From Laetmonice hystrix (lineage: Eukaryota), in contig OZ249452.1 in NCBI GenBank assembly GCA_965235115.1, forward strand, positions 21,080,001 to 21,144,000: 64,000 bases of DNA. Reading direction: 5' to 3'. Both the position numbers and the translations under genes were made by a program. The notes under the pieces were generated by a model. It did not search any database and was not told the origin of the DNA. It saw nothing but the letters and a program-made list of their open reading frames with translations. Shown here piece by piece: positions 9,001 through 63,399 of the stretch; position 1 is the first letter of the stretch, and each line of letters opens with the position of its first letter.

Positions 9001-9712
9001 GTTACTGTGAAAGAAGCTGACCCCTTGGAGTTCTCAGCCTTCACAGAGTACTCTCCAGAATCTGACCCAGTCGATTTGTTAATGATCAACAAATGAGTAT
9101 TACTTTTAGTATCAGTTTCTATTTGGACTCTACGGTCCCATTTCTTCGGCCTGACCTCTGTACCATCCCTGTACCATGTGACCCGTGGCGATGGATTAGC
9201 AGCTACTTTACAAGAAAGCTTTACAGGTTGACCAACATCAACAACTACGGGTTCGGGGGACTGTATAAACACAGGGGCACCAGGAACCTCCCCCCTAACA
9301 CTGCGGTTCTGATTTTCTATCTCGTGTCTGACCTCAACTCGCACCTCCTCTTTAGATTCATTAACCTTTCCCTCACAAGATAACACCCGTGCTGACTCAT
9401 ACTTTGCCTCATCACCTTTTACACCTAGAGCTGCCTTATCTGCATCTTCAAACCTAGCAGATATTTTCCCGGATGCCTGTGCCATGACTGGATGTAATTT
9501 GCCTACTCTGACAGACACAGCCACATCCACCTCACCATTGGAATTTACGGCCCTGACTTTGTAAGTACCACTGTCTTTTTCAGTGGCGTTCTGTATGGTA
9601 AGAGACTGAAGGTCACGTGCAATATCCCATTCAACCTTGACCCTGCGGTCCCACTTCTTGGGCTTGATGGGAATGTCCTCTTTGTACCAAGTGACCTCAG
9701 GTTCTGGAGTGC
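1..9712 (-). CDS. Exon W33: giant intronless exon (>=9712 nt) with a rear Ig half, 17 complete Ig, 1 partial Ig and a unique insert
   Basis: Acceptor CTACAG. The reading frame is the same at 9710 and at position 5, and the ORF track has no minus-strand ORF terminating in this frame, so it is open to the window edge (hence absent from the track). Confidence 0.92.
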
Positions 9713-12700
9713 CTGTAGTAAACGTTGATCACAACACTCACAAACATGTTTCAACTGTGAACAAAGTATCAGTCACATGTTTCAACTCTAAAACAATATA
9801 CCAGACAGAGAGAGGAAAACACGAGTTTTAACGCAATTAGTGCAAAAGCATTAGGTGTAAGAACTAAATAGCAGCCAAATAAAAGTTTCTCATTTCTTGT
9901 TCGGCTCTTAATTTTCGTTTCTTTTTTAACACATACGAATAATATATAAATTATAAATAATACCTGTGTGAGTAAAGTATTTTTAACTATAACTAAAAAG
10001 GAAAAAATCTAGTGATGTTAACTAGAGAAGGATGAGGTTGGTCATTATGGTAAGTTTGGACTATGATGAAAGGTTTGGGATGGGGTTAGGAAAGGTGGGT
10101 GACAGGTATTAAACCAGAGGTGACGATGGTTTCAATTATTTAAGGAACCACATGTGTTGGTGAAGATTTGGGTGTGTTTGAGATGAGCCAGGTGTACTGA
10201 TGTGGACTTACTTGTGTTGTTTCTCACCAAGGTATACAGAAACAATACGATCAAAGGTCAAAGGTTAAACTCCACATGGACCCAACAACATCAACATGGC
10301 AAACACTGGCAAGCCAGACCAAAAGGGGTGAGATGGCCCAGAAGAAAAGTTATGAATGAGAGAAGCAGTGAAGACATGAAGGTATCCCGGGAATGAAAAG
10401 AAAGGGAATTCTTACTGAAACCTCATGTCTCAGAATTTAATCTTGTCGATTCACTTTTCTTTTTAAAAATATTTTTATTTTGCCATTATGTCACCTTAAA
10501 TTAATGTATAATTTATGGAACACATATTTCCCAAGTAGTCGTATGCCTCCTATCTCTAATGACAACTGAAGTTTTGAGAAATAAAATGGCATAAATGCTG
10601 ATTGTTAAAAGACATTGGCAATTTTTTATAATCAATGATAACTTAGTTACGCGTGGAGTGTATGCCAATATCCCAAAATGCTTTACTCCATATTCATGCA
10701 GTGTCTTTTATTGTTTTACTTAATCTTTCATATTGAATTTCAAAATGAAAGTTAGTGTTTGAGATACTCACAATTCATAAACTTTGACGGAATCAAATCA
10801 AATTTTTAATGTTCACAATACCAGCTCTTATACTTTCATGCTGCATAGTTTGACCTTGATACCACAAACTAATAATAGAATAGCTGTGGCTTGGTTGGCC
10901 ACCATTCTATTATGTAGCACTCAAGTGACTGTGTATAGATCAATATCATTCAATGTGTTGTGGTTTTATGCTTTATAACTGTCTAACCTGTGACTAGGCA
11001 CGAAATGGTGATAGTTTCTCCGGGAGTCACCGCCACATACTCAGGGAATCCAGTCACTTTGGGTTCCAAACCATCTTCTGCCTCACAGTCATCACATTGA
11101 GAGGATGCTCCAACTTCTTCCAAACGGCTTTCTGCAGTGGTTACTAGGGCAACTTCCATTGGCAGGTCAGCATCATTTGTAACTTTGGCAGGTTCGAAAT
11201 TTGTGCTGACGTCAGCAACATCAGCTTTGACGTCATCATCTTCTGTCACAGTGGGAAATTCCACATCTGTGCTGACGTCAGCAACATCAGCCATGACATC
11301 AGCATCTTTTATAACAGAGGGAAACTCCACATCTGTGCTGACGTCAGCAATATCAGCTGTGACGTCATCATCTTCTGTCAGAGTGGGAAACTCCACATCT
11401 GTGCTGACGTCAGCAACACCAGCCATGACATCAGCATCTTTTATAACAGAGGGAAACTCCACAACTGTGCTGACGTCAGCAATGTCTGACGGGACGCCAG
11501 CATCCTTTGTAATATTGGGTGACTCCACAACTGTACTAATCTCAGCAACGTCACCAGTTACGTCAGGATCCATTGTAATAGTAAGGCACTCTGTATCTGT
11601 GCTGACGTCAGCAAGATTAGCCATGACGTCAGTATGCTGTGTAACAGAGGGAGATTCTCTAAAAGAGGGAGATTCTGTAACAGAGGGACATTCTGTATTT
11701 TGGTCAAACTCAACATCAGCTGAGGCATCAGCATCCTTAGTAACCTTGGGAGACTGCATGTCTGTGCTGACGTCAGCACTTTCAGCTATGACGTATCTGC
11801 TGACGTCAGCACTTTCAGCTATGACGTACGTATTCTCTGAACCAGAAGAAGATTTCGCAGCCACATTTACTTCATTATCTGTTACAATAGGAACCTCTCC
11901 ATTAGTGCTGGCGTCAGTGGTTTTACATTGCTCCAGTGGGTTTTGTTCTGTGGATACCGCCTCTGGCGAGGACCTGGTGAGGCTCCTGCTTGGTCGGCCC
12001 TTGTCCTCACCCACACTGACCACTACTGTGGCAATCTCTGAGCCATGCCTGTTACTGGCACTGACCGTGTAGTGACCACTGTCTACAGGCCTTGCGTCCT
12101 TCATTGTGAGGATGTAGAGATCCTCTCTAGGGTTCCAGTCTATCTGTATACGTTTGTCCCATCTTCTTGGTTTCACAGGGACGTCGCCCTTTGACCAGGT
12201 CACCTCAGGTTCAGGGTCACCTTTATGTGTGACGTCAGCAGGTGGAGTAAGCAGCGTAGGAATAAGTGTGCTACGGTTAATTAATGGTTTAATACGATTG
12301 TCTATGTTACTGTTTAGTTGCACTTTAACTTAAACTACTTTTAATAACACATTTACTTAAAAAAAAATAAAATCGATTATTTCAAAAAAGAATGTTTGCA
12401 TGGTAAAACTACATCCAAAAAACCGTTATTTTGATTTATTTTCGGTTCTAATGTATGATTAAACAGAGTGATGTATTAAATGACAATGAAAGATCCGACA
12501 GCTACATACATGAAACGTGTACAGGAAACAAATTAATCATGACGACAAATATGTGGAGTACGTTAGAGAGACATACAGAAAGGGATGATAAAAGAAAATT
12601 TCAAGTCAAGAACATAAAATTGTTCTGTGATAAGACGTGATGAAAGTGGTGAGAGTACAGCGAACAATTCTGACATCTTAAATAAATTTTGAATATAGAG

Positions 12701-15700
12701 AAGCATGCTGTAGAGTTTGTAAACGCTCACAAATAGGATATGGATGTGAAGAAACACACCTGGTTTTCTCCTATCATAATTTCATCTTTTTATAATGATT
12801 GAAAGGTGACCTGCATTATGAATGTGTTGATGTACGGCTTGGTATCATTCCATGCACCATTAGCTACACATGCTTCAAGTGTTATGAAAAAAACTTTCCC
12901 TCTGGACATCACTTCAACAAGGTGACAAACAGCTCTGCTAACCTGTGACCTTGCAACTCAGCTTGATGGTTTCGCCGACATCGACTACGGTCGGTTCAGG
13001 TGCAATCACAATTTGTGGACCTTCTGCATCCTCATCATCTTCTTCCTCACTGTCCGATGGTTCCTGGATCGTGAAACTCTGCCTTGTCTCGACGGCAGAT
13101 GCCCCAAAGTCTGTGTCAGCGACCTCCTTGACAGCGAGTCCCTTGGGCAGGCCTTCTTCCCTGAAGGTGGTTGTTGTCATGCCTCCCTTCCCTACCGACA
13201 CCTGCTCCTTCTCAGAACTCTCGACAACTTTGCCATCAACAATGGTCTGTGTGAAGGATCTGACAGTGTGACTGGACTCGTCGACAGACTCGGTCGGGGC
13301 GGATTTACCGACTAGCACGCTGACGGTGAAGTTAAAGCTTCCCTTGGAGTTGTGGGCCTTCACCACATAGTCTCCAGCATCATCTTTGGTGGCATCCTTG
13401 ATGACCAAGGAATAAATGTCAGACTTCATGTCCCAGTCTGTCTTCATCCTTCGGTCCCATTTTCTTGGCTTGATTTGCTTGTCATCCTTATGCCATGTGA
13501 CATCTGGATCAGGGTCACCTATTGTAAGGTCAAAGACGCACGCTAAAGCACAACGATTCTAGGCAACCACACACAGAACACGGCAGTCCATATTGGGATC
13601 GGCTGCTCAAGTTAAATAATTATAGTAAAGTTTGATGTGATAAGGGATGATAATATGTCACTCTAAAATCTGGGAGTACAAATTTATGATGAGGGAATGA
13701 TTCGTCTCAATTAATGCGAAAAAGCTATAAGAGTTCTATAAGTGAATTAATGGGGGATATATAACCTAATAATTACAGGGCATGAGATAAAAAAAAACCT
13801 GAAAAATACTAGACAAAGAGAGAAACCCGTATTACCATATGACATTATAACCGTATGCATATATACATCTTTACACAACTGAAATAGCTTTGAGGTGAGT
13901 GTAGCTGTTTAGTAGACGGCATGCACACAAAAGTTCACAACTTCAACACCATCCCTCCCAACAGCAGTTCTTCCCTGACCGAAAATACAGACAAAACACT
14001 GAAGCATTCAACAATGAAGACAACAAAAAACAGAGAGAAAAGATTCAAAACCTGCTCCTTCAAAAAAGGTAATAATAAAAAATACACCCTTGACGAATTT
14101 CAGTAATCATAAAACTGATTCCTAATGCCATTATCATCGCTATTCCCCCTTAACGTTTGGTGAGCTTTCAAAACTAAATAACTTCTTCGCTGCTAATTTC
14201 GCTGATTAAAAAACACTTTGCGAAGTTTATCTACAGTGGAGTTAATAATTCCACCAATGCTATTCAATCTTTACAATGTAAATTATATTAGATCAAAGCG
14301 TAGAAGCTGGATTTCGTCTACTGCACTCCGTAGAGTATATTCACTGGTGGGGAATAAGAAAGTTGGTAATAAACAGGGGAAGCATGGATGTACGTATAGC
14401 AGTATTGGGAGGACTGGGATTATAAAATTAATGGGCGAATACTGGCTCCTTGATACCTTGGCTGAGTAAGCTTCTTTTTTTACAGCCAGCAAGGTATCAA
14501 AGGTATTTGTTCAGTAAGCTTTCACAGACTCGCAGGAGGAGGAGGTATCGTCCACATTCCTGGAGTGGAACCTGGAGCAGGGTGCAGCATGTTGTTGGTA
14601 CATGATGCTGGGATGATTCGCATTGAATCGGAACATCTGCCTAACCTGAGACTTTGCATGTCAGCTTGATGGTGCCTCCCACATCCACAACTTGTGGTTC
14701 AGGAGCCTGCGTAAACTTTGGGCTGCTGCCTTCATCCTCCGAATCGCTGGGCGATGAAACGCCCTCTAGTGTTACAGTTCGGAACTCTGTGACCGTCTCC
14801 TTGACCACTTCTTGAAGCAGCTGTGTTGGCTCTGTTTTAGCCTTCAATTCTGCCTTGGCAGCCTTAGTCTCTTCAGCAGGAACCGTTTCTGTTGATACTT
14901 CTTCTATGACTTCGAGTTTGTCATCGGTCATCTTTGTGCCAAATTTAATCTCAGACACTCCAGCTTGCCTTTCACCAGTACGTTTTTCAGAAACAGCCGT
15001 GTCAATGACCTTTCCATCTACGACGGTTTCTTCTATGACAGTGACAGTTTCACTGAAGTCTACAGCCTTTGGTGATTCAGGACCACTGTCCGTAGATTTG
15101 GGTATCTCAAGGGTTGTATCGGAAACCTTAGCTTTGGCTGCCTTAGATTCAGCCTTTGCCACTTTGACACTGTCTTTAGGTTTGGCGGCTTTAGAGCCAA
15201 CAGCCTCTGGTTTGCTTTCGGTCTTAGGCACCTTAGCAACGAGAGGCTTGCCAACAGTAACACTAACAGTTTTGGAACAGTCGCCTTGTCTGTTTTTGGC
15301 ACTGACTTTGTATTCACCCGCGTCACGGGTGTAGGCCTTGTTGATTGTTAGCGTGTAAGTATCCTTGGTCAGGTCCTTGTCAACAACGATTCTCCGGTCC
15401 CACTTTTTGGGCATGATGACAACCCTCCCTTGGTACCATGTCACTAAAGGTCGAGGTTTCCCTGAAGAGTAATACTCAGATATTCAAAAAAAGACAATAT
15501 CATACAGTGGGAATACGGATTTTTTTTTCAAGTCCTTTTGGCTCCCCCGAAATTTTCCTCCTTTTTTCTGGGCAGGCCATTTGGTTTTACGACTTGAATA
15601 CCAAGGAGGTCAGAGGGAATTAAACTGTATTGAGGGTTTACAACAAATTTTATAGGGAAACAGTACACAGAACGTTACAAATTTCTCCTTACAAAACTGG

Positions 15701-18700
15701 AACGTTGCACAACTTACAAAAATTGAAAACAGAACACTGTCCTACCATCTGACATATTTTTGGCATAATAACAAGAATGTTTGAATGGTGAAAAAACAGA
15801 AACCAAACCACAAGACCAGGAACTTTCCAAGCAGAAATTGATTAGATCTGAACAGTGAGAGGGAGGGGGGGGGGAGGCTGGAGTATAAAGAGATAACACT
15901 AACGTGGGTTAGACCAGTCAGACTGCCTAAACGTACTCTGTTAGCCATGATTACCACCAATTTCATTGGGAATCACTTCTAGCAAGTTGAACAGGGGAGA
16001 AGGTAGAAACATCTTTAGTGTAGGTACGATCATCCCACGGTTAGAAGGGTATCAAACTCATCAAGAGACACGTCAATCTGTCCAGTTTCAGACTCAGAGT
16101 TAAGTAAGCATATTAAGTCCACTGCCAAAGGTAATAAAGAGTAAGGGTAACTTAGAGCTAGCAGCAGCCATCATTGCCTCCTGACCTGTGACTTTGCAGG
16201 AGAGTTTGATGGTTCCCCCAACGTCCACAGCAACGGGCTCGGGAGATATCTCAAAAGTTGGAGCTCCTGGGACTGCCTTCTTCTTCTCTGGGACCTTCTT
16301 CTCGGTCTTCTCCTGGACCTTCTCGGTGACCACCTCAACAGATGTCTCCATGGCAGCAGCAGACGCTGTCTGGGATGACTCCACAGTTGACTCAACCTCG
16401 GATGTCACCTTTGACTCAACTACTGGTTCAGCTGAAACTGCCCCTTCAGAGGTGGTGGACGACACCGTTTTGGTAACAGTCATTGACTGGGTTGATTCTA
16501 CAGTTTCAACTTTCTCCGTGGTAGGGGTAGTCTTGCCCACAACAACGTTAACCTTCAGGGTAAACCCACCGTGACAGTTTTTGGCTTCCACGGCATATTC
16601 ACCAGCGTCACTGTCTCTGGCGTTGTCAATCGTAAGGACATAAAGGTCCTCAGCCATTTTCCAGTCTATCTGCACGCGCTTGTCCCATTTCCGTGGTTTG
16701 ATGGGTTTGTCGCCCTTGTACCACGTTACTTCAGGTTCTGGGTCGCCTGTTTCAAAGTAGTCAACCAAGTAACCCTATACGAAAACCCCAACTAAAATAG
16801 TCTACAGGTAAAACAGGTCTTACGGTTGCCCCAGAAATAGAACTTAAAATACTGCGCCAGAGACTTCTCACACCATAATGTTAAGTTTGCCTTACAACGG
16901 TAAGGATAAAAAATATGGTACAACCGAAGCTGCAATTCTTGCACGTTATTCTTCGATTTCCTTTGGTAATACAAGTTGATGTTTTTGCCAAGATATGTGA
17001 AAAAATTAAAGAGATGCAATAATTAAAATAAAACTCTGAGGCACCAATAATAGAATAAAACTTTCGGTAGCATAACCAGCAGTACATCAGCAATTGTCAA
17101 TTTAACTTTGACAATTCAAAGGACAATGAACAGCAAATTATTCCAGATAAAACTTCCGTCAGACAATATGAGAACAAGTCAGACTGTTAACTCTGGCCGC
17201 GACCCAATAGGGATGAGGGAAGGGTTGAAATAGGACTGTCAATGTCAATATAAACACAGCACACCTCTAGCTTCACTCAGTCATGTTTAACCATAGCCTC
17301 AGTCAATGATGAGCAGGATTAGGAGGAAGGATTGAACAGTAACAATGTCAGTATGAACCTGGTAAGGTTTAACGAGAACACGGTTTATGTGTGTGACGAA
17401 ACACCACAAGAAGACCGACAACTTCAGGTTGAGCATATGATGATGGCATTCCTCAGTGGGGCAAACAATGACACACAATAAATCTGTATGGGTAATAATG
17501 AGATCATGCCTTACGGGAATTCACTCCTCATTTTGAACATAACAATCACAGATGCCACCCCAAACCATCGAAACAACATTATGAATATATAAAAGCATTC
17601 AATCTAACCTGTAACTTTGGTGGTCAGACGAATGGTTTCCCCGAGGTCCACACAAACTGGCTCCGGAGCAACTTCAATGGTCGGAGCGCCAGAATCCTCT
17701 TCTTCCTCTGATTCAGAAGAATCAGGTTCTTCCACCTGTCCAACCGTCTCTTCTTCAGCCCCCGGTTTGATTTCTATTTCTTTGACCTCCTCGACCAACA
17801 GTGAGGCTTGTGTCTCCTCAACTGGAGCGGTTTTTATCTCCTGGACAGATGTTTCCTTTGTGACTGTTTCACCGTCAACAGTTTCCATAACCTTCTCCTG
17901 TTTGCTGACCTTCTCCATTTTAACTTCTCCATCCACGACGGTTTGCTGCACTGTGGTCACTGACCTACTTGATTCTAGGACCTCCGTGACCTTGGGCTTG
18001 CCAACAACCACACTGATTGTGTATGTGTAATGACCAACTGAGTTTTCAGCCTTTATTGTGTATTCGCCAGCATCCTCCTTCCTGGCACATTTTATGATTA
18101 ATTCGTACTCATCAGTCTCCATGTTCCAGTCGATTTGAATGCGTTTGTCATATTTCCTGACTTTAATTTGCTTGTCAGCCTTGTAGAAAGTGACATCTGG
18201 GCTGGGATCTCCTATGATAAACATGACAAAGCAACCATTTAATGTCAGTCTCTCTACTATCAGAGCAACTATAGCAGACAAGATGAGAAAACACCAGTAT
18301 TATTACTACACTACAGTTATTCAAGAATACAAACAGTGCAGCTTTATATCAAATTTTAAAAGTGGACCATTATTTACTTTAAACCAAATTTACTTTAACC
18401 CAAGTGTTTCACCATTCATTTTAACATATCGTTTTCATTGAAGAGGTTATATATATTTTTTTACACATTTTATGGTGACCTTACCTGAGAATTTACATTT
18501 GATGTGGATTGTTTCGTCAACATCAACGATAACAGGCTCAGGAGTGATCTCCATCTTTGGGGCCCCTGATGGCACTTCCTCGACTTCAGCAATCTCCTCG
18601 CAAACAGGGACAGACGCTTCCTGGGTAACGCTCACTGAAACATCCTCTGCAACATCTCCTGAGACAGTTACAGTGGCTGAAACGTCTTCCGTAACAGATG

Positions 18701-51700: not shown

Positions 51701-54700
51701 CTCAGTGACAACTCGAGTTTCCTTTACAGTTTCCTTGGGTTTCGGAGATTTGTCTCCAACTGACACTAATATACTGAACTCATTGGATCCAAGACTGTTG
51801 TATGCTTTCACAGTGTACTCGCCGACATCATCCTCAGTGGCGTCCTTGATCACCAATGAATAATTGTCTGTTTCTACATCCCAACTTGTCTTTACCCTGG
51901 TGTCGTATTTCTTAATTTTGATCTGTTTTCCATCTTTGTACCAGTCAACTTCTGGTTCTGGCTCACCTGTGAGAAGCACGCACGTATATTAATAGGAAGG
52001 CGACGCCTATCAATATCGTCTTCTAATTGACAACATTCAAGTGCCGACACAGCTCAGGCTTATATGCAAGTGTCATATTTCAACATTGTGAAAAAGAAGT
52101 ATCATTCATATCATTTTAGCAGGAGGAAACATTAATGAAACTATTTTACCGATTTTCCGTTGAAGGATTTAATAGTGTTTTATTGAAATAAGTACTGTAT
52201 AGTTCATGAGATAAGTCATTACCAAGACAAAACCTTACAGGTGCTGTTATATTATGATATGACCAAAGGGGATTGAGTATCGACATTCATTCTCGTATAC
52301 CAGAATAAGTACATAGAGAAAGGAAACATAGAATAACTGCAAAAATGCAATTTAAAAAGTCGTGTTTCATCATTTTAGAAAAATACCGGAAAAGAAATGC
52401 TGAGTAAACAATTGTTTGGTAATATCATGCAAAAGTAGTTAATCTCACAACATTGCCCAGCTTGTATTGGAAATATTAAAATCATTTCCATGTAGGCATG
52501 TACATATTGGCAACATGGAACTTCTGCAGTGTCTCCGTCAAATGTTGACATCACTGTCAAGTGCATACAGTCCATATAGCACATCTTAGTTTAAAACCAA
52601 GATATTACAGAAAGCCAGTGCGCAACGTAGTCAATTCGGCTCCTGTATGAAATGAACACCATACATTTTTTTGACCAAATATAACAGACAGTGATATTAA
52701 GTGTTCTTCTTTGACTAACCACACAACCCTCCTGTCATATTGTGGTTTCAAAGAAGAGAAAACAATGGCGACAACTTTTGCCCAATATTAACAGTATTAG
52801 TTCGTCACTCTATAAAACTGTTACGTTCTAACCTTTTGCTTTACAAGTCAGCTTGATTGTGGCGCCTGCATCCACTTTCAGTTTCCTTGTGTTCATTTCA
52901 ATCTTAGGTATTCCTTCTTCTTCTTCTTCTTCTTCTTCTTCTTGTTCCGACTCTTCAGAGCTGCTCTCCGCAATGCTACAGGGAGCCTCTTTCACAGAAG
53001 GTTTTTCTTCGGACTGCACTTCAGGTTCCTGAGGAACTCCTTCCACAGGAGCCTTTTCTTCAGCCTTGAAGTCAGGTTCCTTAGGAACCCTTTCGACAGG
53101 AGCCTTTCCATCAGGCTTTATCTCAGGTTCCTGAGGCTTCATCTCAGGTTCCTGAGGCTTCATCTCAGGTTCCTGAGGCTTCATCTTAGGTTCCTGAGGC
53201 TTCATGTCAGGTTCCTCAGGAGCCTCCTTCACAGGAGCCGTTTCCTCAAGTTTAATCTCAGCTTCCTTAGGAGCCTCCTTGACAGGCGCCTTTTCCTCAG
53301 ATTTCATTTCAGGTTCCCCATGAGCGTCCCCGACAGGAGCCTCTTCAAGAGGCTTCATCTCAGGTTCCCCAGGAGCCTTTTCCCCAGGCTTCACCTCAGG
53401 CTCTGTAAATACCTCTTCTACAGAAGCTTTTGGCTTCATCACAGGTTTCCTGGGAGCGTCCTCAACAGAAGGTTTTTCTTCAGGCTTCACCTCGGGCGTC
53501 TTGGGAACCTCTACTACAAGAGCCTTTTCCTCGGGCTTCACTTTAGATACCTTGGGAGTCTCTTCAGTGATGCCAATATCTTCTCCTTCTGCTTCTTTCA
53601 GGTCAGCCCTCACTTCTGCTTTCGCTGTAATTTCCTCTGAAATTCCTTCCGTCACCATTTTCTGTACGATTTCCACCTCTGCCTTGGGTTCCTCAGACAC
53701 CACCTCTGCAATGGTCTTTCCAACAATTTTGACACCAACAACGGCTTCTTCGGTGAGAACTCGAGTTTCCTTTACAGTTTCCTTGGGTTCAGGAGATTTG
53801 TCTCCAACTGACACCAATACACTAAACTCGTTGGATCCAAGACTGTTGTATGCTTTCACAGTGTACTCGCCGACATCATCCTCAGTGGCGTCCTTGATCA
53901 CCAATGAATAATTGTCTGTTTCTACATCCCAACTTGTCTTCACCCTCGTGTCATACCTTTTTATCTTGATTTGCTTCCCATCTTTGTACCAGTCAACATC
54001 TGGTTCTGGCTCTCCTGTCAGAATCAGGCATGGTCATTATATACTAAATTTCCATGAAAGTAAGACCACGGCACATTTGCTGTTGCTCGGTTTTCTTTAT
54101 CTTTTACTTAGAGAACCACTTACTTGTAAGTTATATTTATCTACCAATCCGAAAATACAACTACGTGTGCATAATTTCATTTGCTAATAGTGGCCCCAGA
54201 ATTGAACAAATGTATGCTTACACGTGCTGAATTGGTAGACACTGATTGTTTTGCGCATGGTTTCACATTTATGTGACTCTTTAATTGTTAGAAAAATAAA
54301 TTCTGATGGTTGTCCGTCCTCATTATGTTACCATTTTAATATTAAAGGTCGGTACATTAACGTCCTTAAACATAAAGGTCGGTACATTAACGTCCTTAAA
54401 CATGAAAATCGTTTTCAAAGGAAAGCAAGCTTGCACACATCTTGCCTCAAAATTCAAAAATCTGCACAAGGTTTCCATATAATCATATACCATATTAAAA
54501 AGCATAGCAATGATGTTTTCCTTCAATCATACATACATGCCGACCTTACCCGTGACATGTAAAGCCTGCACATATCCCAAGTATCTGCTTACAGCAAAGC
54601 ATACATTAATATCTTGCTTATATATACTCGGTGTATAATAAAGACCTCATGAGTGCAATGGTTACAACAGTGGTGACCTGCAAGGGGAGAGCAAATTTCC

Positions 54701-57700
54701 ATGCCTTATGTGCGTAAGTGGTGATAGGATTGTGCATGGATGGCGCCTTATGAAAAGACAGACTTCAAATTCTTGATGACCCCTTCTTTGAATAATTGCC
54801 CACCCTAAGGTCTTAGCACAGCATCAAAGAAGACGAATCCAATGGTGCATTCGGTAAAACAACTTCAAAAGCAGCCAAATACGTTGTGATTGGTCCTGAC
54901 CTGTGACTCTACAAGTCAGGGTTACTGTAGCTCCAACATCTACATTGGCCTCCTTGGTCGCCATTTCAACCTTGGGTGGACCTTGTTCTTCTTCACTAGA
55001 CGAGACCTCCTCTTTTACCTGTGATTTTGGTTCTTCCTGGACTAATGCAGGTTCAGTTTCTTCCTTCGCCTCTGGTGTTGGTTCTTCCTTGACTGCTTCA
55101 GATTTAAGCTCTCCCATCACCTCTGCTGTTGGTTCCTTGACTACTTCAGCTTTAGGTTCTTCCTTCGCCTCTGGTATTGGTTCTTCCTTGACTACTTCAG
55201 CTTTAGGTTCTTCCTTTGCCTCTGGTATTGGTTCTTCCTTGACTACTTCAGCTTTTGGTTCTTCCTTCGCCTCTGGTATTGGTTCTTCCTTGACTGCTTC
55301 AGATTTAAGCTCTTCCTTCGCCTCTGGTATTTGCTTTTTCTTGACTGGTTCAGGTTTCTGCTCTTCCTTGACCTCCGGCATTGGTTTTGGTTCTTCTTTG
55401 ACTGGTATAGGTTTCCCCCTAATTTCTGCCATTGGTTCTTCCTTGATTAGTACAGGTTTAGGCTCTTCTTTAGCCTCTGATTTTGGTTTTTCTTTGACTG
55501 TTTCAGGTTTCAGCTCTTCCTTCCCCTCTGGTATTGGGCTCGACTCCTCCTGGACTAGTTTGGGCTTAAGCTTCACCTCTGGCATTGGTTCTTCCTCTCT
55601 TCGTCCAGTTTCTGATTCTGATTCAGAACTCGATGACCTCAAAGGTGTGACAAAGGTTGGTGGGATATGTCTTTCAGACAATCGCAGGTCACCAACTTGG
55701 GCGGCTTCTTTAGCCTGAACACTAACCTGGTTTTTTCTCAATTTTCTGTCTTTCTTTGGCTTTGCGACTTCCTTGATATATTTTACTTGTGATTCCTCTT
55801 CACTTGAGAGGACTGTTATGTTACCAACCAAGACTTCAGCCCGCTTAAAGCAAGAACCCTTAGAGTTTTTAGCAACTACTTTATACATTGCAGCATCATC
55901 CACTGTGGCGTTGTGAATTTCCAAAATGTAATCATCTGTGTTCACATTCCAGTCAGTTTTAATACGAGGATTTCTTCTTGTTGCTCTGATCTCCTGGGTA
56001 CCTTTGAACCAGGTGACGTCAGGTTCTGGCTCACCTAACGAGTTAAATCACCAAGAAGACTGTTATCGTCAAACACCCTTATACCTTGGTAAATTAATTA
56101 TATTCACTTTCCCAATGTGGCAGTAATAAAATACACCAAAATGGAAAGAAACACATAGTCTCAAGCATAACCCATACCCATCAACGAGGTTAAAAAAGGA
56201 AAGATCGCTGCAAGATAAGAACACAGATATTGCTGTTGGTAAGTGTGTAGTAATTCAAAGTTATATACAGAGAATGCTGAAATAAATAGCGCCAGTGTAG
56301 CCATCTACATGTAAAAACTCTCTTGTGTCATGCAAACTCTAAGCAGAAAATTCCGCATAGCCTAATGACTACATATGTACCACCCGCTCAAATAATGATT
56401 CAACGTTCTACTTCACAACAAACAGTAAACAATAATAGACAACGAAAATGTTGGGGTTAGGCTATTCTGAAAAAAAAGTGAATAAAACTTTATTTGCAAC
56501 CCTGAAGAACAGAACTGAAATAAAAAAGAAACCATTATATATTCATAAGTTAGTTAACTGCAAATAAAAGTAATGGTGTCTTCATGGACATCCAGAAGCA
56601 AAAGTCATTTACTCCTTCATGCAGAAAGAGTTATACCCATCTTGCCTGATACACTGCAAGTCAGCCGAATTTCGTCTCCGACGTCTACAATAATTGCTTG
56701 TGGTTTCACTCTAAACTCTGGGGCACCCTTTTGAGCGGTAGTGTCATCAACTTGCTTGGAATAAGGCTCTGGTTTCCTTGCTGGCTCTTCATCGTCCTCA
56801 CTTGAGGAACTAAAACTGTCAAATGATACATCTATCCTTCCGTGAGGTTTCTGAGGGATTTCCTCTTTGGCAGCAGAGGGGATATCCTTCGGCTTTGGTT
56901 CGGTAGCGTCTGGTTGCAAGACTTGCTCCTTAGATTCCGTTTGCAAGTCTACCTTTATGGGCGCAACTTTTTCTTCGGGCTTTAGTTGTTTAATCACCTT
57001 TTCATCTGGCCGCGGTTCTGTGTCTGTTGGTCGGTGTTGTGCTGGTTCCTCCTCGCTTGAAGAGCTGAAGCTTTCAAACGAAATGCCTTTCTTTGTCCAA
57101 GGTTCAGGTTGCTCTTTCTCCTCTGCAGGAACAGACTCCCGCTCAGGGGCCTCCTCCGCTGAACTCTCCTCTGAGCTGTCAGTGTCCCATGGCTTCCGAG
57201 CCCTCTCCTTCAACTTCAAACTCTCCTTCATTGATTCGTGCTGTTTGCGTGTCCTTTTCAGCTTCTTGCTCCTTTTCACGCCTTCTTCCTCACCACTCTC
57301 TTCACTTGAACCTTCATCTCCACCTTCATACTTATCCGGTACTACATCTCTTGGTCTACCCTTGGCTTCATCAGTTGGTACGTCTGTCTCCTGAACAGAT
57401 TTGCTGGGAGCTTCTGAAATAGGTATTTTGCCTTCTTCAAAAGCTTCAGAGAACGGTACCTTGACATCTGCTGGAATTTCGTAACCTTTCTTTTCCTCTT
57501 CTGACTTTTCAGGCAATGGTTTTATTATAGCTGTAGCAGCTAGTAAATCAGGCTTCTCGATGACGTATGAAACTTCAGAGGGAGTTTTAATCTCAGATTC
57601 TTTTTCTTTCTCTATAATCATGATTTTCAGTTCATCAGACGCTTCTTCTTCTCTATACTGTCGTTTGATGACAGGGACTGGACTTGGCAAGGAGGCACCT

Positions 57701-60700
57701 TCACTGCTGACGCCCAACGCATTCTCAGCATAAATCATTATCAGATATTCATGGTCTTCCTTAATCTTCTCAGTAATCTTGAAGGAGAGAGTTTTGGCGT
57801 CGACCCGTCCAGCTTTGTGGAACTTTTTGGTCGAGGCGGCGTCCTTTATGACAATCACGTAGTTTGTGACTGGCGATCCTCCGTCACTCTGTGGAGCTTC
57901 CCAGTTGACGAGGATACCGTCTGGATGGGCTTCAATTACAGTGAGGTTCTGTGGAGCTAACGGCTGTTTGGCTTCAGCAGGTTCTGCTGGTTTCATCTCA
58001 TCTTGGGGTTTGTAGACTTCGGTGTCACTCAACGGTTCCTCCTTCGGGGACTGAGTTTCATCTTCCGGCTTGGATTCTTTTTCAGGTGATCTGGGATACT
58101 CCCTTTCCTCTAATGTTGGTGAGGGAAGCTCTGTAGGTTTGGTTACTGCTACTGGACCTTTCTTGGGCTCTTCCCCAGCAGCGAATTTTGGTACACGTTC
58201 CACAGGGCTCTCTTCCCTATGCGTAAGTTTACCTGCGTCATCCAACACATCTGTATAAACCAATTCATGTGGTCTCTCTACATCAGACAAGATTGCTGCT
58301 TCTGGTTCCTTAGCTTTCCCCAGAGCTTCTGAGACAAGTTCGTTGGGTTTTGTCTGAGGTTCTACCTCCTTAATGATCTCTCGAACCTCTGGTGCCACTT
58401 CTAAGGGTTTCTTAATCTCAGGTTCTTTGTCTATAACTGTGACTTTCAGTTCATCGGATGCCTCTTCAAGTCTAAACTGTCGTTTGATGACAGGGACTGG
58501 ACTTGGCAAGGAGGCACCTTCACTGCTGACGCCCAACGCATTCTCAGCATAAATCATTATCAGATATTCATGGTCTTCCTTAATCTTCTCAGTAATCTTG
58601 AAGGACAGAGTTTTGGCGTCGACCCGACCAGCTTTGTGGAACTTCTTGGTCGAGGCGGCGTCCTTTATGACAATCACGTAGTTTGTGACTGGCGATCCTC
58701 CGTCACTCTGTGGAGCTTCCCAGTTGACGAGGATACCGTCTGGATGGGCTTCAATTACAGTGAGGTTCTGTGGAGCTAACGGCTGTTTGGCTTCAGCAGG
58801 TTCTGCTGGTTTCATCTCATCTACCTCCTCTGTGGGTCCCACTTGGGTTTTTTTGTCAGCTTTAGTGTCTCTCACTGGTTCTTTCTGTGGGAGCTGAATT
58901 TCATCTTCTGGCTTTGATTCTGTTTCAGTTGATTTGGAAGATTTTTTTCCCTCTTCAGTTGCTGGTTCTGGTTCTTTAGCTTTCCTCAGAGCTTCTGGAA
59001 CTAGTTCCTCGGGTTTAGTCTGGGGTTCTACCTCCGGAGGGATCTCTCCAACCTCTGGTGCTGCTCCCAAACGTTTCTTGACATCACGTTCTGAGTCTTT
59101 GTCTATAACTGTGACTTTCAGTTCATCGGATGCCTCTTCAAGTCTGAACTGTCGTTTGATGACGGGGACTGGACTTGGCAAGGAGGCACCTTCACTGCTG
59201 ACGCCCAACGCATTCTCAGCATAAATCATTATCAGATATTCATGGTCTTCCTTAATCTTCTCAGTAATCTTGAAGGAGAGAGTTTTGGCGTCGACCCGAC
59301 CAGCTTTGTGGAACTTCTTGGTCGAGGCGGCGTCCTTTATGACAATCACGTAGTTTGTGACTGGCGATCCTCCGTCACTCTGTGGAGCTTCCCAGTTGAC
59401 GAGGATACCGTCTGGATGGGCTTCAATCACAGTGAGGTTCTGTGGAGCTAAAGGTTCCCTGGCTTGATCTACGTCATCTTCTTCAAGTGACTCAGGAGAA
59501 GCTAGTTTTTCGATAGTTTGTGTTAGAAGCTCTGAAGGCTTGGTAGCTGCATCTGGGCCTGTTGTAACTTCTTCCCATGTAGGGAGTTTTGGTACATCTT
59601 CCATGGTAAACTTTTGCTTGGCCTCTGGTTTGTCTTTGTCGTACACTTCCACAACAGAAGTCAATTCCCCGGGTGTCTCTGAATCAGGTAAAACTGCTTG
59701 TTCATGGCAAACGGGACGTTCGACCTCTTTGGGTTTGGTTCTTAAACCCGAAGGTCGTTCAACTTCTTCAACGAGCTGGATTTCATGTGGGGCGACGCCT
59801 ACAGGAGCTTTGGGTTTTTCTTCATCTTTTGGTACTTCTTGTGTAACGGGCTGTATTCTCTGTGGTTCCTCTCTCGCCAAGTACTCCTTTTTACATACCT
59901 TGACAAGGATCGTGTATGAAGTTTGGCCATTCATATTAGACACTACCAGGGTATAGCTACCAGAATCATCAGGTCTTGCGTCAGTTATGACCAGGACAAA
60001 CAGATCCTGCATGACATCATAATGTATCTTGATCCTTGGTTCATGACCTGAAGGTCTGAGCTGAACTCCGTCCCTAAACCATGCGACGTCTGGTGTGGGT
60101 TCGCCTGGAATTTCAATTAAACCATTGGAACTTACCTGCCGTTAATAACACCTGCTTAAAGCATTAATCAATGGGCTATAACATTCAGGGATTGACTCTA
60201 TNNNNNNNNNNNNNNNNNNNNNNNNNNNNNNNNNNNNNNNNNNNNNNNNNNNNNNNNNNNNNNNNNNNNNNNNNNNNNNNNNNNNNNNNNNNNNNNNNNN
60301 NNNNNNNNNNNNNNNNNNNNNNNNNNNNNNNNNNNNNNNNNNNAAATATTTACAATTTCTTTCCTGTATTAGAGTTGCGACATGCAGGTTTACAGTGGGA
60401 TATTGCAATCTTTCCTACACCAATATAAAAGTCTCAGAGCACTTCCATAGCGAGAGGATAAAATGGTAGATGATTCTTTACACGTGTAGGACTGTTAATA
60501 TATTATTATCCGAGAAACAAAGAGTATCAAGATGTTATTTCAAATTTACTTGGAGAATTGGGATTGTGTGTGACACAACAAACAGTAAAAGCATACCACC
60601 ACATCAAAACGTATACCTGTAATGAAGAATCACGGGAAAAAAACACACAGGTTTCAAAGCATAAAATGAAAGCATATTTTCTTACTCTGATGAGGAAAAG

Positions 60701-63399
60701 ATACATTTCTGAAAGAGCTGCCTGGAATAGGAACAGTAAAACACAACACAACACAGCACAAGACAGCATAGTTATCTATTTACAGCAAAAATATGAATCA
60801 TTTCATCTCAGCACTGACCTTGGACCTTTGTTGTTAGTCGAATGGTTTCACCTTCCTTAACGCTCACTGGTTCGGGTGCAATTATGATTTCTGGTCCAGG
60901 AGCCTTTCCTGCGTCAGGCTCATCCTGTATAGATATTTGGACTTCAGTTGAGAATACAAATCATTTCTCAACTTTAACACTTTCATATTTTCCTTTGACA
61001 GGATATCATATGGTAGATATTATTATTTTCTGGATGATTTTACTTATTGTATATCCCACCCCCGGATACAAATTAAACATCTTGGTGAAGCTTGCACTTC
61101 TTTTCTGAAGGTAAAAACTTTTAAACTTTGAGAATTTATTATTTCTCTCATGAACCAATTGATAACATCTTTCCCGACAGAAGGATTTCTCACTTGTAAT
61201 AATTGCCACTACTGACGTACCTTTTTGCTGGCAGTTTTCACTGGAGAAGGAGTCTCTCCTCCCTCAGGACCCAGGCCAACCTCGTTCTCAGCATACACCC
61301 GGAAGATGTACTCATGGTCCTCTTTAAGGTTGTCCACCTTGTAAGTCAATGTCTGCCCATCAACGGTACCGACCTCCTTGAACTTCTTCTTCTCTACATC
61401 ACGCATGACGATGGTGTAGGACTTGATGTCTGAGCCTCCGAGGTCAGCTGGAACCTCCCAGGTCAAGGTGACACTGGTCGTAGTGAATTCCTTACATCTG
61501 ACCTTTTGTGGAGACGAAGGTTCGGTTTTGGGCTTATCTTTCACTTCAGGAGTTGGTTCTGGCTTGACCTCCTCAACTGGTTTTGGAGCTTCCTCAGGCT
61601 TTGTATCTTCAGGCTTGGGTTTGTCTTTGACATCAGGGGCTTCTTCGGGCTTGACTTTTTCCTCAACTGGTTTGGGGGCTTCTGCAGGTTTGGGAGCCTC
61701 TGCGGGTTTCTGCTCAGCTTCTACAACTACTTGCTCAGCGACGGGTTTCTCCTTGGGTGCAGGAGCTGCTGCAGGAGCTGCTGCAGGAGCAGTAGCTTCT
61801 ATTGTGAGCTTCTCCTCCTGTTCATAAACCACACGCTTATCAGGAATCCGAATCGCCGTCGCCAACTCGGCGCCGTCATTACTGACACCAACAGTATTCT
61901 CAGCGTAGCACATGATCATGTATTCGTGTCCTTTCTTGATCTTCTCGGTGATCCTCAAGGTAAACATGTTGGAGTTGACTCGGCCGGCCTTGCGGAACTT
62001 CTTGCTGGTGGCCAAATCTTTCATGACGACGACATAGTTGGTGATCGGTGACCCGCCATCGCTCTCAGGAGCCTCCCACGTGATAGTAACGGCATCGGGC
62101 TGTGCCTCTGTCACGCGAAGACTCTTGGGTGCCAATGGTACTGATGGTTTAGCTGAAAAATATACGGATTCTACTCAGTCCGGTGGTAATCACTTCTATA
62201 ATATATTCATTAGCCTTATTCTCGATATCCGAGTTGTTAGGTTAACTTAATCCAATCATACATTAAGATAATCGTCTGTTAACTCGCTGGATAGTGAATT
62301 GAAAACTAAAAGTATTGATATCTGGGTCGTGACCTATGAAAGACCAAGAACAAACATTAGGACAGAATTTTACAGACGAGTTCCAGGACTTTACAGACGA
62401 GTTCCAGGACTTTACAGACGAGTTCCAGGACTTTACAGATGAGTTCCAGGACTTTACAGACGCGTTCCAGGACTTTACAGATGAGTTCCAGGACTTTACA
62501 GACGAGTTCCAGGACTTTACAGACGAGTTCCACTAATGTGCCAAACGATTAGTTTGATTTCTATTTACCCAGTTTCCTCTACACTATAGCTGATAAAAAG
62601 GTTTGAATTATTATGAGAGCCCTTGAATTGCATGTAGACGTGAATTTTGTCAGTGTTTACCTGGTGCAGCCTTGGGCTCCTCTGTCGGTTTTGCCTCAAC
62701 TGGCTTCTCTTCTATAGGTTTCTCAGCTGGCTTCTCAGCTGGCTTCTCAGCTGGCTTCTCTGCTGGTTTCTCAGTAACTGTTTCATCAACAGGTTTCTCT
62801 GCTGGCTTCTCCTCTGGTTTCTTAGCTGGTCTCTTGGTCCTGACGGGTTCTGTTTTCTGAGGCATACTCTTTCCTTGAGAGTTTTCGGCAGACACCTAGA
62901 GCAAGTATTTCCCTTCACAGTTACAATCACAACAAGTGTTAAAATCTGAAGATTGACTCAGTAAATCAAAAACTTTGATAATTATGCCTATAAATATATC
63001 ATACTTTCCGGAATCAATGTTTTGTGAGATACCTGGTAGCTTTCTGCTTTTATGAGCCTTATAACATATACATTAATCAAGAGAAACAGATGGCGAAGAA
63101 TCAATCAGAACCCCATATCATACATTATACTTCAATAATAACCTGCCAGTAATGTATGAAAGAAGTGCTCACCTGAATGCGGTAAACCATGTCCTGTTTC
63201 AGGTTTTTGATAGTGATCGTCAAGGTCAGAGCGTCCACCTTCTCCACAGGTTCAAACGTACCATCGTCGCCCTCCTGGATTTCAATGATGTACCCAATGA
63301 CCCTGGATCCACCATCACTGTCCGGGCCCTCCCATGTGATACTGATGGAATCAACCGTTACGTCTGTCACCTCAACACTCTTGGGTCTAGTGGGAGTGG
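1..63399 (-). CDS. Giant titin/connectin-like muscle protein gene (Ig I-set + Fn3 + PEVK), multi-exon, partial at both ends
   Basis: 33 exons with GT(GC)-AG boundaries and compatible phases. They encode repeated I-set Ig motifs (P-x-F...C-x-V-x-G-x-P-x-P-x-V-x-W...D-x-G-x-Y-x-x-x-A-x-N-x-x-G), Fn3 motifs (W-x-x-P-x-x-DGGS-x-I/V-x-x-Y) and literal PEVK repeats. Orthology to a named gene cannot be fixed from sequence alone. Confidence 0.93.
10988..12220 (-). CDS. Exon W32: split-Ig cassette with 22-aa ADVS acidic repeats
   Basis: Acceptor ATAAAG (atypical), donor GTTAGA; 1233 nt. Confidence 0.85.
11205..11810. repeat. Coding 66-bp (22-aa) repeat built on the 12-bp palindrome GCTGACGTCAGC
   Basis: Palindrome at 11205, 11271, 11337, 11403, 11469, 11601, 11766, 11799. 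Confidence 0.92.
12943..13518 (-). CDS. Exon W31: split-Ig cassette
   Basis: Acceptor CAATAG, donor GTTAGC; 576 nt. Confidence 0.9.
14646..15461 (-). CDS. Exon W30: split-Ig cassette
   Basis: Acceptor CTTCAG, donor GTTAGG; 816 nt. Confidence 0.9.
16186..16746 (-). CDS. Exon W29: split-Ig cassette
   Basis: Acceptor AAACAG, donor GTCAGG; 561 nt. Confidence 0.9.
17609..18211 (-). CDS. Exon W28: split-Ig cassette
   Basis: Acceptor TCATAG, donor GTTAGA; 603 nt. Confidence 0.9.
18485..19819 (-). CDS. Exon W27: split-Ig cassette with E/V/S/T-rich 13-aa repeats
   Basis: Acceptor CATTAG, donor GTAAGG; 1335 nt. Confidence 0.92.
21104..21682 (-). CDS. Exon W26: split-Ig cassette
   Basis: Acceptor CTGTAG, donor GTTAGA; 579 nt. 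Confidence 0.9.
22455..23120 (-). CDS. Exon W25: split-Ig cassette
   Basis: Acceptor ATTTAG, donor GTTAAA; 666 nt. Confidence 0.88.
23360..23470. repeat. Intronic 55-bp direct repeat x2
   Basis: accaaacagagcaacactaacattgttg...ggttgctagaca at 23360 and 23415. Confidence 0.9.
23908..24660 (-). CDS. Exon W24: split-Ig cassette
   Basis: Acceptor TCTTAG, donor GTTGGA; 753 nt. Confidence 0.9.
24861..24924. repeat. Intronic 21-bp unit x3
   Basis: gtaactttacaatgtaccatt x3. Confidence 0.95.
24961..25587 (-). CDS. Exon W23: split-Ig cassette
   Basis: Acceptor ATGTAG, donor GTTCGC; 627 nt. Confidence 0.88.
26114..26722 (-). CDS. Exon W22: split-Ig cassette
   Basis: Acceptor TACCAG, donor GTTGGA; 609 nt. 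Confidence 0.9.
26854..27248. repeat. Intronic minisatellite, 39-bp unit x10, perfect
   Basis: cattactcgccctgttaaaagttcctatgatttgtacac repeated without spacers. Confidence 0.97.
27881..28821 (-). CDS. Exon W21: split-Ig cassette with a -1 frameshift (stop at 28055-28057); pseudo-exon, truncating exon or assembly error
   Basis: Acceptor CTTTAG, donor GTTGGC; 941 nt (3n+2). The rear-Ig frame ends GAG AAA TAA, while the front-Ig half (APKFIQPPEPVFVDIGKTFTLSCSISG) is in another frame. Confidence 0.7.
29594..30406 (-). CDS. Exon W20: 813-bp cassette, copy 6 of 6
   Basis: Acceptor CTCCAG, donor GTTGGG. Confidence 0.88.
31318..32130 (-). CDS. Exon W19: 813-bp cassette, copy 5 of 6
   Basis: Acceptor CTTTAG, donor GTTGGG; begins GEPLLRVTW rather than GEPVPEVTW. 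Confidence 0.88.
32903..33715 (-). CDS. Exon W18: 813-bp cassette, copy 4 of 6
   Basis: Acceptor CTCCAG, donor GTTGGG. Confidence 0.88.
34627..35439 (-). CDS. Exon W17: 813-bp cassette, copy 3 of 6
   Basis: Acceptor CTCCAG, donor GTTGGG. Confidence 0.88.
36349..37161 (-). CDS. Exon W16: 813-bp cassette, copy 2 of 6
   Basis: Acceptor CTCCAG, donor GTTGGG; near-identical to W15. Confidence 0.88.
38071..38883 (-). CDS. Exon W15: 813-bp split-Ig cassette, copy 1 of 6
   Basis: Acceptor CTTTAG, donor GTTGGG; 813 nt. Confidence 0.88.
39113..39474. mobile_element. Putative MITE / non-autonomous DNA transposon (hAT-like TAGGGCTGG termini), ~360 bp
   Basis: ~36-bp terminal inverted repeats with 3 mismatches and 1 indel; no ORF; no intact target-site duplication found. 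Confidence 0.7.
39980..40699 (-). CDS. Exon W14: split-Ig cassette
   Basis: Acceptor ATACAG, donor GTTGGA; 720 nt. Confidence 0.9.
41494..42087 (-). CDS. Exon W13: split-Ig cassette
   Basis: Acceptor CTTTAG, donor GTTGGA; 594 nt. Confidence 0.9.
42471..42968 (-). CDS. Exon W12: split-Ig cassette, short linker
   Basis: Acceptor GAACAG, donor GTAAGA; 498 nt. Confidence 0.92.
43995..45422 (-). CDS. Exon W11: split-Ig PEVK cassette
   Basis: Acceptor CAACAG, donor GTCAGC; 1428 nt. Confidence 0.92.
46249..47448 (-). CDS. Exon W10: split-Ig PEVK (PEAK-type) cassette
   Basis: Acceptor CAACAG, donor GTCAGA; 1200 nt. Confidence 0.92.
47100..50950. repeat. Recent ~2.3-kb duplication of PEVK exon ends plus intron (47449-48434 vs 49734-50694)
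   Basis: Introns near-identical over long stretches; intron 51967-52832 is a more diverged third copy. Confidence 0.9.
48435..49733 (-). CDS. Exon W9: split-Ig PEVK cassette
   Basis: Acceptor CAACAG, donor GTTAGG; 1299 nt; 17/18-aa PEVK repeats. Confidence 0.92.
50695..51966 (-). CDS. Exon W8: split-Ig PEVK cassette
   Basis: Acceptor TCACAG, donor GTTAGG; 1272 nt; 17-aa PEVKPEEKAPVEEAPKQ repeats. Confidence 0.92.
52833..54014 (-). CDS. Exon W7: split-Ig PEVK cassette (paralog group W7-W11)
   Basis: Acceptor TGACAG, donor GTTAGA; 1182 nt; contains PQEPEMK 7-aa repeats. Confidence 0.9.
54343..54402. repeat. Intronic 30-bp direct repeat x2
   Basis: taaaggtcggtacattaacgtccttaaaca x2. Confidence 0.9.
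54901..56034 (-). CDS. Exon W6: split-Ig cassette with 17-aa EEPKAEVVKEEPIPEAK repeats
   Basis: Acceptor TTAG, donor GTCAGG; 1134 nt, phase 1-1. Confidence 0.9.
56646..60104 (-). CDS. Exon W5: rear Ig + three near-identical Fn3 + acidic linker + front Ig (phase 1-1)
   Basis: Acceptor TTCCAG; 3459 nt open; matches ORF 56617..60012; donor at the conserved Gly is CAG|GCAAG (alternative GT donor would end the exon at 56637). Confidence 0.88.
57660..59455. repeat. Three near-identical ~300-350-bp Fn3-coding modules
   Basis: Copies offset by 819 and 672 bp; near-identical antisense ORFs at 57751, 58570 and 59242. Confidence 0.95.
60202..60343. other. Assembly gap (142 N) in the intron between W4 and W5
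   Basis: Run of n bases. Confidence 0.99.
60819..60924 (-). CDS. Exon W4: front third of the first split Ig domain (phase 0-1)
   Basis: Acceptor ATACAG, donor GTCAGT; 106 nt; DEPDAGKAPGPEIIIAPEPVSVKEGETIRLTTKVQG; too short for the ORF track. Confidence 0.8.
61221..62152 (-). CDS. Exon W3: two Fn3 domains separated by a PEVK-like linker (phase 1-0)
   Basis: Acceptor TTTTTCAG, donor GTACGT; 932 nt; two W-x-x-P-x-x-x-GG-S Fn3 motifs. Confidence 0.9.
62369..62533. repeat. Intronic minisatellite, 21-bp unit x~8
   Basis: tttacagacgagttccaggac repeated with few substitutions. Confidence 0.95.
62661..62895 (-). CDS. Exon W2: end of Fn3 domain 1 plus EKPA-repeat linker (phase 0-1)
   Basis: Acceptor CTAG, donor GTAAAC; 235 nt; VSAENSQGKSMP completes the Fn3 begun in W1, followed by EKPA repeats. 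Confidence 0.85.
63173..63399 (-). CDS. Exon W1: N-terminal part of Fn3 domain 1 (phase 1-0)
   Basis: Acceptor TTGCAG, donor GTGAGC; 227 nt; encodes TPTRPKSVEVTDVTVDSISITWEGPDSDGGSRVIGY...VYRIQ. Confidence 0.85.

Follow-up and report, generated by a model that had tools for sequence, protein, structure and literature searches.

Background

Titin-type springs determine how stiff a passive muscle is and over what length it works, and vertebrates and insects tune them by skipping exons that coincide with protein domains. In vertebrate titin each immunoglobulin (Ig) domain is encoded by one exon, bounded at the edges of the domain. The variant exons of Drosophila Dscam1 are mutually exclusive, one being chosen of many under the guidance of pairing between docking and selector RNA, and each encodes half a domain. 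The spring exons of vertebrate titin and of insect sallimus (sls) are alternatively spliced, those for the sls PEVK region between muscle types (PMC12063666). In kettin a repeat of about 130 amino acids (aa), 95 of them Ig, recurs many times, and the Drosophila kettin gene has only 12 exons in all (PMC3207145), so that its modules cannot each carry an intron. An annelid holds the longest recorded sarcomere, about 40 µm, according to a citation in PMC12063666, and a very long adjustable spring would be of physiological interest in such an animal. Here we describe a window of 64,000 nucleotides (nt) from the genome of Laetmonice hystrix (assembly G000, contig C29, positions 21080001-21144000), in which a predicted titin-like gene carries a long array of Ig domains interrupted by introns at one and the same codon. 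The exons are labelled W4 to W33, and each of the 28 from W5 to W32 joins the rear part of one Ig, a linker and the front part of the next.

Intron position and exon structure

The array gene lies on the minus strand, where a six-frame scan placed every long open frame with Ig motifs. Acceptors were taken as AG|GN followed by x-P-x-P-x-V-x-W, and donors as following C-x-x-x plus the opening G of a Gly codon; between W4 and W33 the window scan matched 29 acceptors and 29 donors to these forms. From W4 (60924-60819) to W33 (acceptor 9712) all 29 introns are phase 1, as the original prediction had held, and the split codon is the Gly of C-x-x-x-G|x-P-x-P, whose first G ends one exon and whose last two bases open the next. 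Introns are of the GT-AG type in 28 cases and GC-AG in one, the W5 donor CAG|GCAAGA (56646/56645) being the single non-GT donor of the array. The flanking motif is well kept: Cys stands at position -4 in 27 of the 29 fronts (Thr in W4, TTKVQG, and W28, TTKVTG), and all rears have x-P-x-P or a near form, with the variants EPLLRV in W19, KPRPLV in W30 and IPTPEL in W14.

Rear parts begin at position 27 of the 90 in Pfam I-set, which puts the split at I-set 26/27, in the conserved Gly of the B/C turn. Each of the 28 exons thus encodes some 64 rear Ig residues (strands C-G), then 67-1054 aa of linker and finally some 26 residues of a front (strands A-B). The description of these parts as half-Igs is a loose one, the two parts being uneven. 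The window has 29 instances of the split in one and the same Gly codon, and the count rises to at least 48 over the 264 kb obtained by including 100 kb on either side; chance is no explanation for such repeated splitting.

Between acceptor and donor, each of W5 to W32 is open without interruption over 498-3459 nt (for W21, in the second allele described below), so that no domain-boundary intron is needed, again in line with the earlier claim; introns within linkers would still be compatible with the genomic sequence. Exon lengths are multiples of three (3n) in 27 of the 28 cases, W21 (28821-27881) alone departing with 941 nt in the assembly, and all 28 exons are phase 1-1 symmetric, W21 being 3n in its second allele. 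The 3n lengths had been noted correctly, but they carry no independent weight because they follow from the uniform phase of the introns. An assembly gap (N, 60202-60343) falls wholly within the intron between W4 and W5 (60818-60105) and touches no coding sequence; it is flanked by a phase-1 donor (CAAG|gtcagt) and a phase-1 acceptor (ttccag|GCG), and the frame would be continuous once these are joined. Because the gap could conceal further cassettes, the true numbers may exceed 29 introns and 28 exons, which are to be read as minimum counts.

Extent, identity and conservation of the gene

The array had been described up to W33 but does not end there. This exon is 12.4 kb long and intron-less, with about 22 Ig-linker modules by count of the D-x-G-x-Y motif, 18 of them with a recognisable B/C site, and it closes with a phase-1 donor (CAG|GTTAGG); beyond it lie at least 21 additional split cassettes, down to about 21026500 on C29. 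Near 21025000 the array gives way to Pro-rich open frames without a Pfam domain. A search with one cassette against the 627-Mb genome gave 72 matches, all within C29:21026232-21140102.

A search with the W29 protein recovered exon-shaped open reading frames (ORFs) in other assemblies, starting with G-D-P-E-P-E-V and ending with C-K-V-T-G, and loci of like design were found in three of them. On the contig with a 51% match to W29, a row of ORFs of 215, 371, 211, 202, 264 and 176 aa corresponds to 200, 444, 192, 186, 271 and 191 aa here and is followed by an ORF of 5178 aa. Given the matching order and sizes and the giant ORF, the cassettes look individually orthologous and the intron-less block appears to be old. 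Two more loci, of about 37-40% identity, have like acceptors, donors and 3n lengths. The split-Ig architecture is real, more extensive than first described, and conserved.

The unsplit Ig copies of W33 match Pfam I-set with E 1e-129 over 999 aa, and the best solved structures are Igs of the titin I-band, I65-I70 (3b43, E 4e-43), and Z1Z2. In W6-W11 the linkers (279-377 aa) are composed of 24-27% E, 12-18% K, 11-17% P and 9-13% V, with internal repeats of about 48-51 nt; most other linkers are rich in E/V/T/S, and low complexity is the rule among the linkers. Fn3 exons lie upstream (window 61212-63451, continuing to G000:C29 21155068), and three Fn3 domains lie within W5. These and the array would appear to belong to one transcript. 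On this evidence we have good confidence that this is a giant annelid muscle gene of the titin/sallimus family and that the array encodes its spring, the I-band-like part, an assessment that covers jointly the origin and the splicing geometry proposed below.

About ten upstream Fn3 exons typically end in ...LPYG|GTAAGT at domain borders, and two upstream Ig exons have introns elsewhere, at I-set positions 8-10. The intra-Ig intron would therefore belong to the Ig-linker array and not to the Ig exons of the gene generally. Since the Fn3 exons are cut at domain borders and the array exons within Igs, two exon-domain registers appear to coexist within one gene.

Some further observations concern the Fn3 part. 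The exons from G000:C29:21153633-21155068 to 21145085 are phase 1-1 at domain borders, the next exon continuing with ...PP.PP.NL.V. Introns in this part (62266-62532 in the window; G000:C29:21149160-21149732 and 21151369-21151800) contain long tandem repeats with units of about 21, 52 and 46 nt, and in the 52-nt unit the end of an exon recurs with its donor (AYQ|GTAATT). The 1054-aa stretch between the Ig parts of W5 had been called a linker, but it contains the three Fn3 domains (window 57571-59451), in repeat copies 93-96% identical.

Splice-site constraint and donor class

At the 48 split sites the exon ends in CAG 43 times and in AAG 5 times, and the split residue is Gly at all 51 split sites scored for it. 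The unsplit sites of W33 are less uniform: among the 18 recognisable ones the residue is Gly in 11 and Ala in 7, and CAG precedes it in 7 of 18 (Fisher test of split against unsplit, p = 3e-5 for the residue and p = 7e-5 for CAG). As judged from sequence, the W33 modules serve as an internal control, by which the split sites appear to be functional and under selection. Gly and CAG are kept where the domain is split and relaxed where it is not, so the splice signal appears to constrain both a protein residue and synonymous positions.

The donors of the array form a class of their own, CAG|GTYAGV. Over 48 donors, position +3 is T in 31, C in 12, A in 5 and never G, that is, a pyrimidine in 43; +5 is G in 46, and +6 is T in only 2. 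The 13 donors inferred for Fn3 exons of the same gene, used as background, resemble GTAAGT: all 13 have a purine at +3, and 9 of 13 have T at +6 (array against Fn3 donors: p = 1.3e-9 at +3, p = 2e-6 at +6). The relatives' loci have GTYAG donors too. Examples of the class are found at 52832, 41493 and 16185 in the window, and at L001 1425 and L003 18220 in relatives. Divergence has brought the cassettes down to 30-60% identity, and the introns are not otherwise alignable, yet the pyrimidine at +3 has been kept; that T and C interchange there while purines are avoided suggests constraint. The donor class would fit a deliberately sub-optimal, coordinately recognised site. G|GTTAG is the sequence at about a third of the donors inside the window, and retention of such an intron would place an in-frame TAG directly after the Gly.

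Recursive splicing or re-splicing was considered as well. The split Gly codon is GGT in 25 of 51 cases, against a background of 27% (p = 6.5e-4), giving junctions of the form CAG|GTGAN, and exons starting with GTGAGC at 56034, 51966, 45422 and 42968 would, once spliced, produce CAG|GTGAGC, which resembles a 5' splice site of the re-splicing type. We rejected this reading, as only 4 of the GGT junctions have the G at +5 that donors nearly always have, and it is further weakened in that GT after AG| is a common acceptor context.

Probable duplication history

The linkers had been described as unique to each exon, which does not hold for all of them. The 813-nt exons W15-W20 share about 99% identity, each pair differing at 5-17 positions, and W7-W11 form one PEVK-like family with 77-92% identity, which would be the older of the two. 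The introns of W15-W20 fall into three mutually unrelated classes (i15/i17/i19; i18/i20; i16). Homology extends over 28534-38889, from the rear-Ig start of W15 (38889) to the rear-Ig end of W21 (28534), and the W15-W21 block is built of 3309-bp two-exon units with 98.7% identity. This pattern would fit unequal crossing-over between rear-Ig segments together with homogenisation limited to exons and recent duplication of the two-exon units.

In W7-W11, five related rear halves pair with five related fronts of the preceding exons. When the history of rear halves was compared over all cassettes by a Mantel-type test, the value was 0.39 with the front of the same exon and 0.46 with the front of the same domain; with recent duplicates removed, neither was significant.

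The most likely origin of the array is, we infer, tandem duplication of an intron-bearing Ig-linker module. The B/C-turn Gly codon of a founder module would already have been split by a phase-1 intron, which would then have been copied at least 48 times through tandem duplication and unequal crossing-over at the conserved rear-Ig segments. W33 is most readily explained if a stretch of neighbouring introns was lost long ago, turning about 22 modules into the 12.4-kb exon.

A frameshift allele of W21

In the assembly, the frame of W21 breaks between 28103 and 28058, where CAGAG is present twice (28067-28076, + strand). Among public sequencing runs, a search matched the stretch in three DNA runs of one sample and in no RNA run; contigs of these three were compared over this exon. 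Two of the three carry the assembly sequence, and the allele of the third is 5 nt shorter at 28067, with linked single-nucleotide polymorphisms at 28094, 28134 and 28152. With a single CAGAG copy, W21 is open through to ...LSCSIS|G. An in-frame allele is thus present in the same sample, and the frameshift is a polymorphic 5-bp tandem duplication alongside an intact allele. Over its first 288 nt, which encode the rear Ig, W21 matches W19 at 95% identity; the remainder is unique.

The truncating TTN variants that healthy humans carry cluster in exons of low inclusion (PMC4689403). The co-carried frameshift of W21 recalls this tolerance and, by analogy, may be a hint of regulated skipping.

The disrupted frame in the assembly, the near-identity of W15-W20, which makes them hard to assemble, and the gap in the intron between W4 and W5 might also be taken as signs of decaying repeats or of an assembly construct with no working gene. 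That is scarcely credible, since 27 of the 28 exons are open over 498-3459 nt, the second allele of W21 is open as well, splice consensus is retained at synonymous sites, unlike at the unsplit sites, and other assemblies show a like design.

Hybrid Ig domains and exon skipping

Splicing of neighbouring exons would restore every Ig. Because the exons are 1-1 symmetric and cut at a structurally equivalent point, skipping of any run of exons would keep the frame, drop whole linkers and leave one hybrid Ig. The original prediction, that any donor joined to any downstream acceptor rebuilds an Ig, is borne out by this geometry, the product being in frame and of normal Ig length. It had also proposed structure prediction of a chimeric Ig, which we carried out for the most extreme case, the skipping of all 28 cassettes, in which the front of W4 (35 aa) would meet the rear of W33 (72 aa); the halves were modelled as two chains. 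The model reached an ipSAE of 0.65, against 0.02 for the best control; the mark applied to ipSAE is attained by 51 of 78 solved complexes and by 2 of 108 mismatched pairs. For the partner, pLDDT was 79 or higher, and at least 94% of contacts agreed between runs. Contacts between front residues 27-33 and rear residues 35-42, and between front 19-23 and rear 65-69, match in the model the B/E and A'/G strand pairing expected for the I-set fold. In silico, this supports structural compatibility of these two Ig halves.

All donor-acceptor pairs are frame-compatible and the most distant hybrid was modelled confidently, as a free combinatorial choice among the at least 28 cassettes, selecting both length and chemistry of the spring, would demand. 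We nevertheless regard such free choice as improbable. The intron comparison reported below brought out no selector-like element, and many cassettes, such as W15-W20, are so nearly identical that most combinations would be indistinguishable. The known isoforms of titin and sallimus, moreover, reflect block-wise skipping rather than free choice, as is generally known (PMC12063666).

In our estimate it is as likely as not that some exons are skipped in blocks and in a tissue-specific way, above all the PEVK-like W6-W11 and the near-identical W15-W20. A more specific proposal is tentative, and we hold it to be rather unlikely in its full form: the weak donor class CAG|GTYAG would mark the at least 48 intra-Ig introns, and a regulator could include or skip cassettes through it, setting spring length in different annelid muscles. 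If this is true, each skip would leave a hybrid Ig that can still fold, and titin would be tuned in a way unseen in vertebrates and insects.

Several points weigh against the account given here. Splice sites, exon order and every statement on skipping are read from sequence logic. The titin family label derives from domain type and architecture within the 264 kb examined; I-band titins such as sallimus are without a kinase (PMC12063666). The Fn3-exon donors that serve as background were placed from conserved module ends and not from RNA. Comparison of the 48 introns near donors, near acceptors and in their middles showed no common 7-mer above shuffles, although structured or degenerate elements could escape it. 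The predictor used for the hybrid is familiar with the Ig fold, and it was given two chains in place of one polypeptide. The heterozygous frameshift of W21 may be a plain recessive defect. Finally, the conservation of cassettes one by one in a relative and the intron-less modules of W33 speak for constitutive use.

These last features, together with the absence of a shared 7-mer above shuffles, are consistent with the array being a pure legacy of duplication, in which all cassettes are constitutive and the common intron position has no present regulatory use. Duplicating one module alone yields uniform phase and 3n lengths, cassettes that are constitutive parts would keep their individual order and size as they do in the relative, and some 22 modules of W33 do without any intron. 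We give such a legacy somewhat less than even odds. It is set against the alternative splicing of known titin spring regions (PMC12063666), which makes skipping plausible here too, the conserved and unusual donors, with purines avoided at +3 in 43 of 48 and in the relatives, and the tolerance of the W21 frameshift allele in the sequenced animal.

Feature coordinates

Exons of the split-Ig array and the assembly gap, in coordinates of the window
Feature	Position	Strand	Length (nt)	Remarks
W4	60819..60924	-		Front-only exon; phase-0 acceptor atacag|GAT; ends ...RLTTKVQ + G|gtcagt, phase 1
Assembly gap (N)	60202..60343	.		Inside intron W4/W5
W5	56646..60104	-	3459	Rear Ig, 1054-aa linker with three Fn3, front Ig; GC-type donor
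W6	54901..56034	-	1134	Linker rich in E/K/P/V
W7	52833..54014	-	1182	PEVK-like family
W8	50695..51966	-	1272	PEVK-like family; internal repeats of about 48-51 nt
W9	48435..49733	-	1299	PEVK-like family
W10	46249..47448	-	1200	PEVK-like family
W11	43995..45422	-	1428	Rear Ig of PEVK-like family, front Ig of next family
W12	42471..42968	-	498	Shortest linker, 67 aa
W13	41494..42087	-	594	
W14	39980..40699	-	720	Rear Ig diverged (IPTPELTW)
W15-W20 block	29594..38883	-		Six 813-nt cassettes, about 99% mutual identity
W15	38071..38883	-	813	
W16	36349..37161	-	813	
W17	34627..35439	-	813	
W18	32903..33715	-	813	
W19	31318..32130	-	813	
W20	29594..30406	-	813	
W21	27881..28821	-	941	Frameshifted in the assembly; 936 nt and open in the other allele
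W22	26114..26722	-	609	
W23	24961..25587	-	627	
W24	23908..24660	-	753	
W25	22455..23120	-	666	
W26	21104..21682	-	579	
W27	18485..19819	-	1335	Linker 346 aa, rich in E/V/T/S
W28	17609..18211	-	603	Front Ig without Cys (TTKVTG)
W29	16186..16746	-	561	Ortholog P0001 in another assembly, 51% identity, like exon shape
W30	14646..15461	-	816	
W31	12943..13518	-	576	
W32	10988..12220	-	1233	
W33	1..9712 in window	-		Start of a 12,441-nt exon reaching G000:C29:21077272

The mitochondrial contig of the assembly (G000:C35) has 16,826 bp and a GC content of 32%, with TGA as a sense codon. Its tRNAs were called on one strand, a single overlapping minus-strand call looking spurious, and the order cox1-N-[cox2]-D-Y-Q-W-R-H-F-E-P-T-C-G-M-V-L...S-I-K-S resembles what we take to be the conserved annelid arrangement; the assignment of the gene to an annelid depends on this resemblance.

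Comparison with known systems

Across the whole spring the exon borders are displaced by a quarter of a domain, and other assemblies have kept this displacement, so any tuning by skipping would have to pass through hybrid Igs. The array thereby poses the question whether Ig halves of different modules are interchangeable in a mechanical protein, and whether a conserved class of 5' splice sites coordinates dozens of exons. Should all exons turn out to be constitutive, the locus would still illustrate cleanly that duplicating a module can fix the position of its intron, and that the demands of splicing can hold a residue in place, Gly being kept at split sites and Ala allowed at unsplit ones. 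We found no description of intra-Ig introns in invertebrate titin in the open-access full-text literature, which is no proof of novelty.

The vertebrate titin I-band is likewise a giant muscle spring of I-set Igs and PEVK-like disordered segments; it contains the closest solved Igs (I65-I70), and its phase-symmetric exons likewise permit in-frame skipping. The phase 1-1 border cuts of the upstream Fn3 exons resemble those of vertebrate titin. The exon borders of the array, however, lie inside the Ig, so that each exon holds two partial domains and a linker, and PEVK-like sequence shares its exon with Ig parts. Skipping is documented in titin and would be a prediction for the present gene.

With Drosophila Dscam1 the array shares exon borders inside Ig domains, and in the exon 4 and exon 6 clusters the choice of exon likewise makes hybrid Igs. 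Exons of a half domain only, set between constant exons as in Dscam1, are not what the array contains, and the 7-mer comparison with shuffles brought out no selector or docking repeats of the Dscam1 type among its 48 introns. Its exons instead run from the rear of an Ig across a linker into the front of the following Ig, and the conceivable mode of choice is skipping. Sallimus/kettin is also built of an Ig and linker module repeated many-fold, but the kettin linkers are roughly 35 aa long, against 67-1054 aa in the array of L. hystrix.

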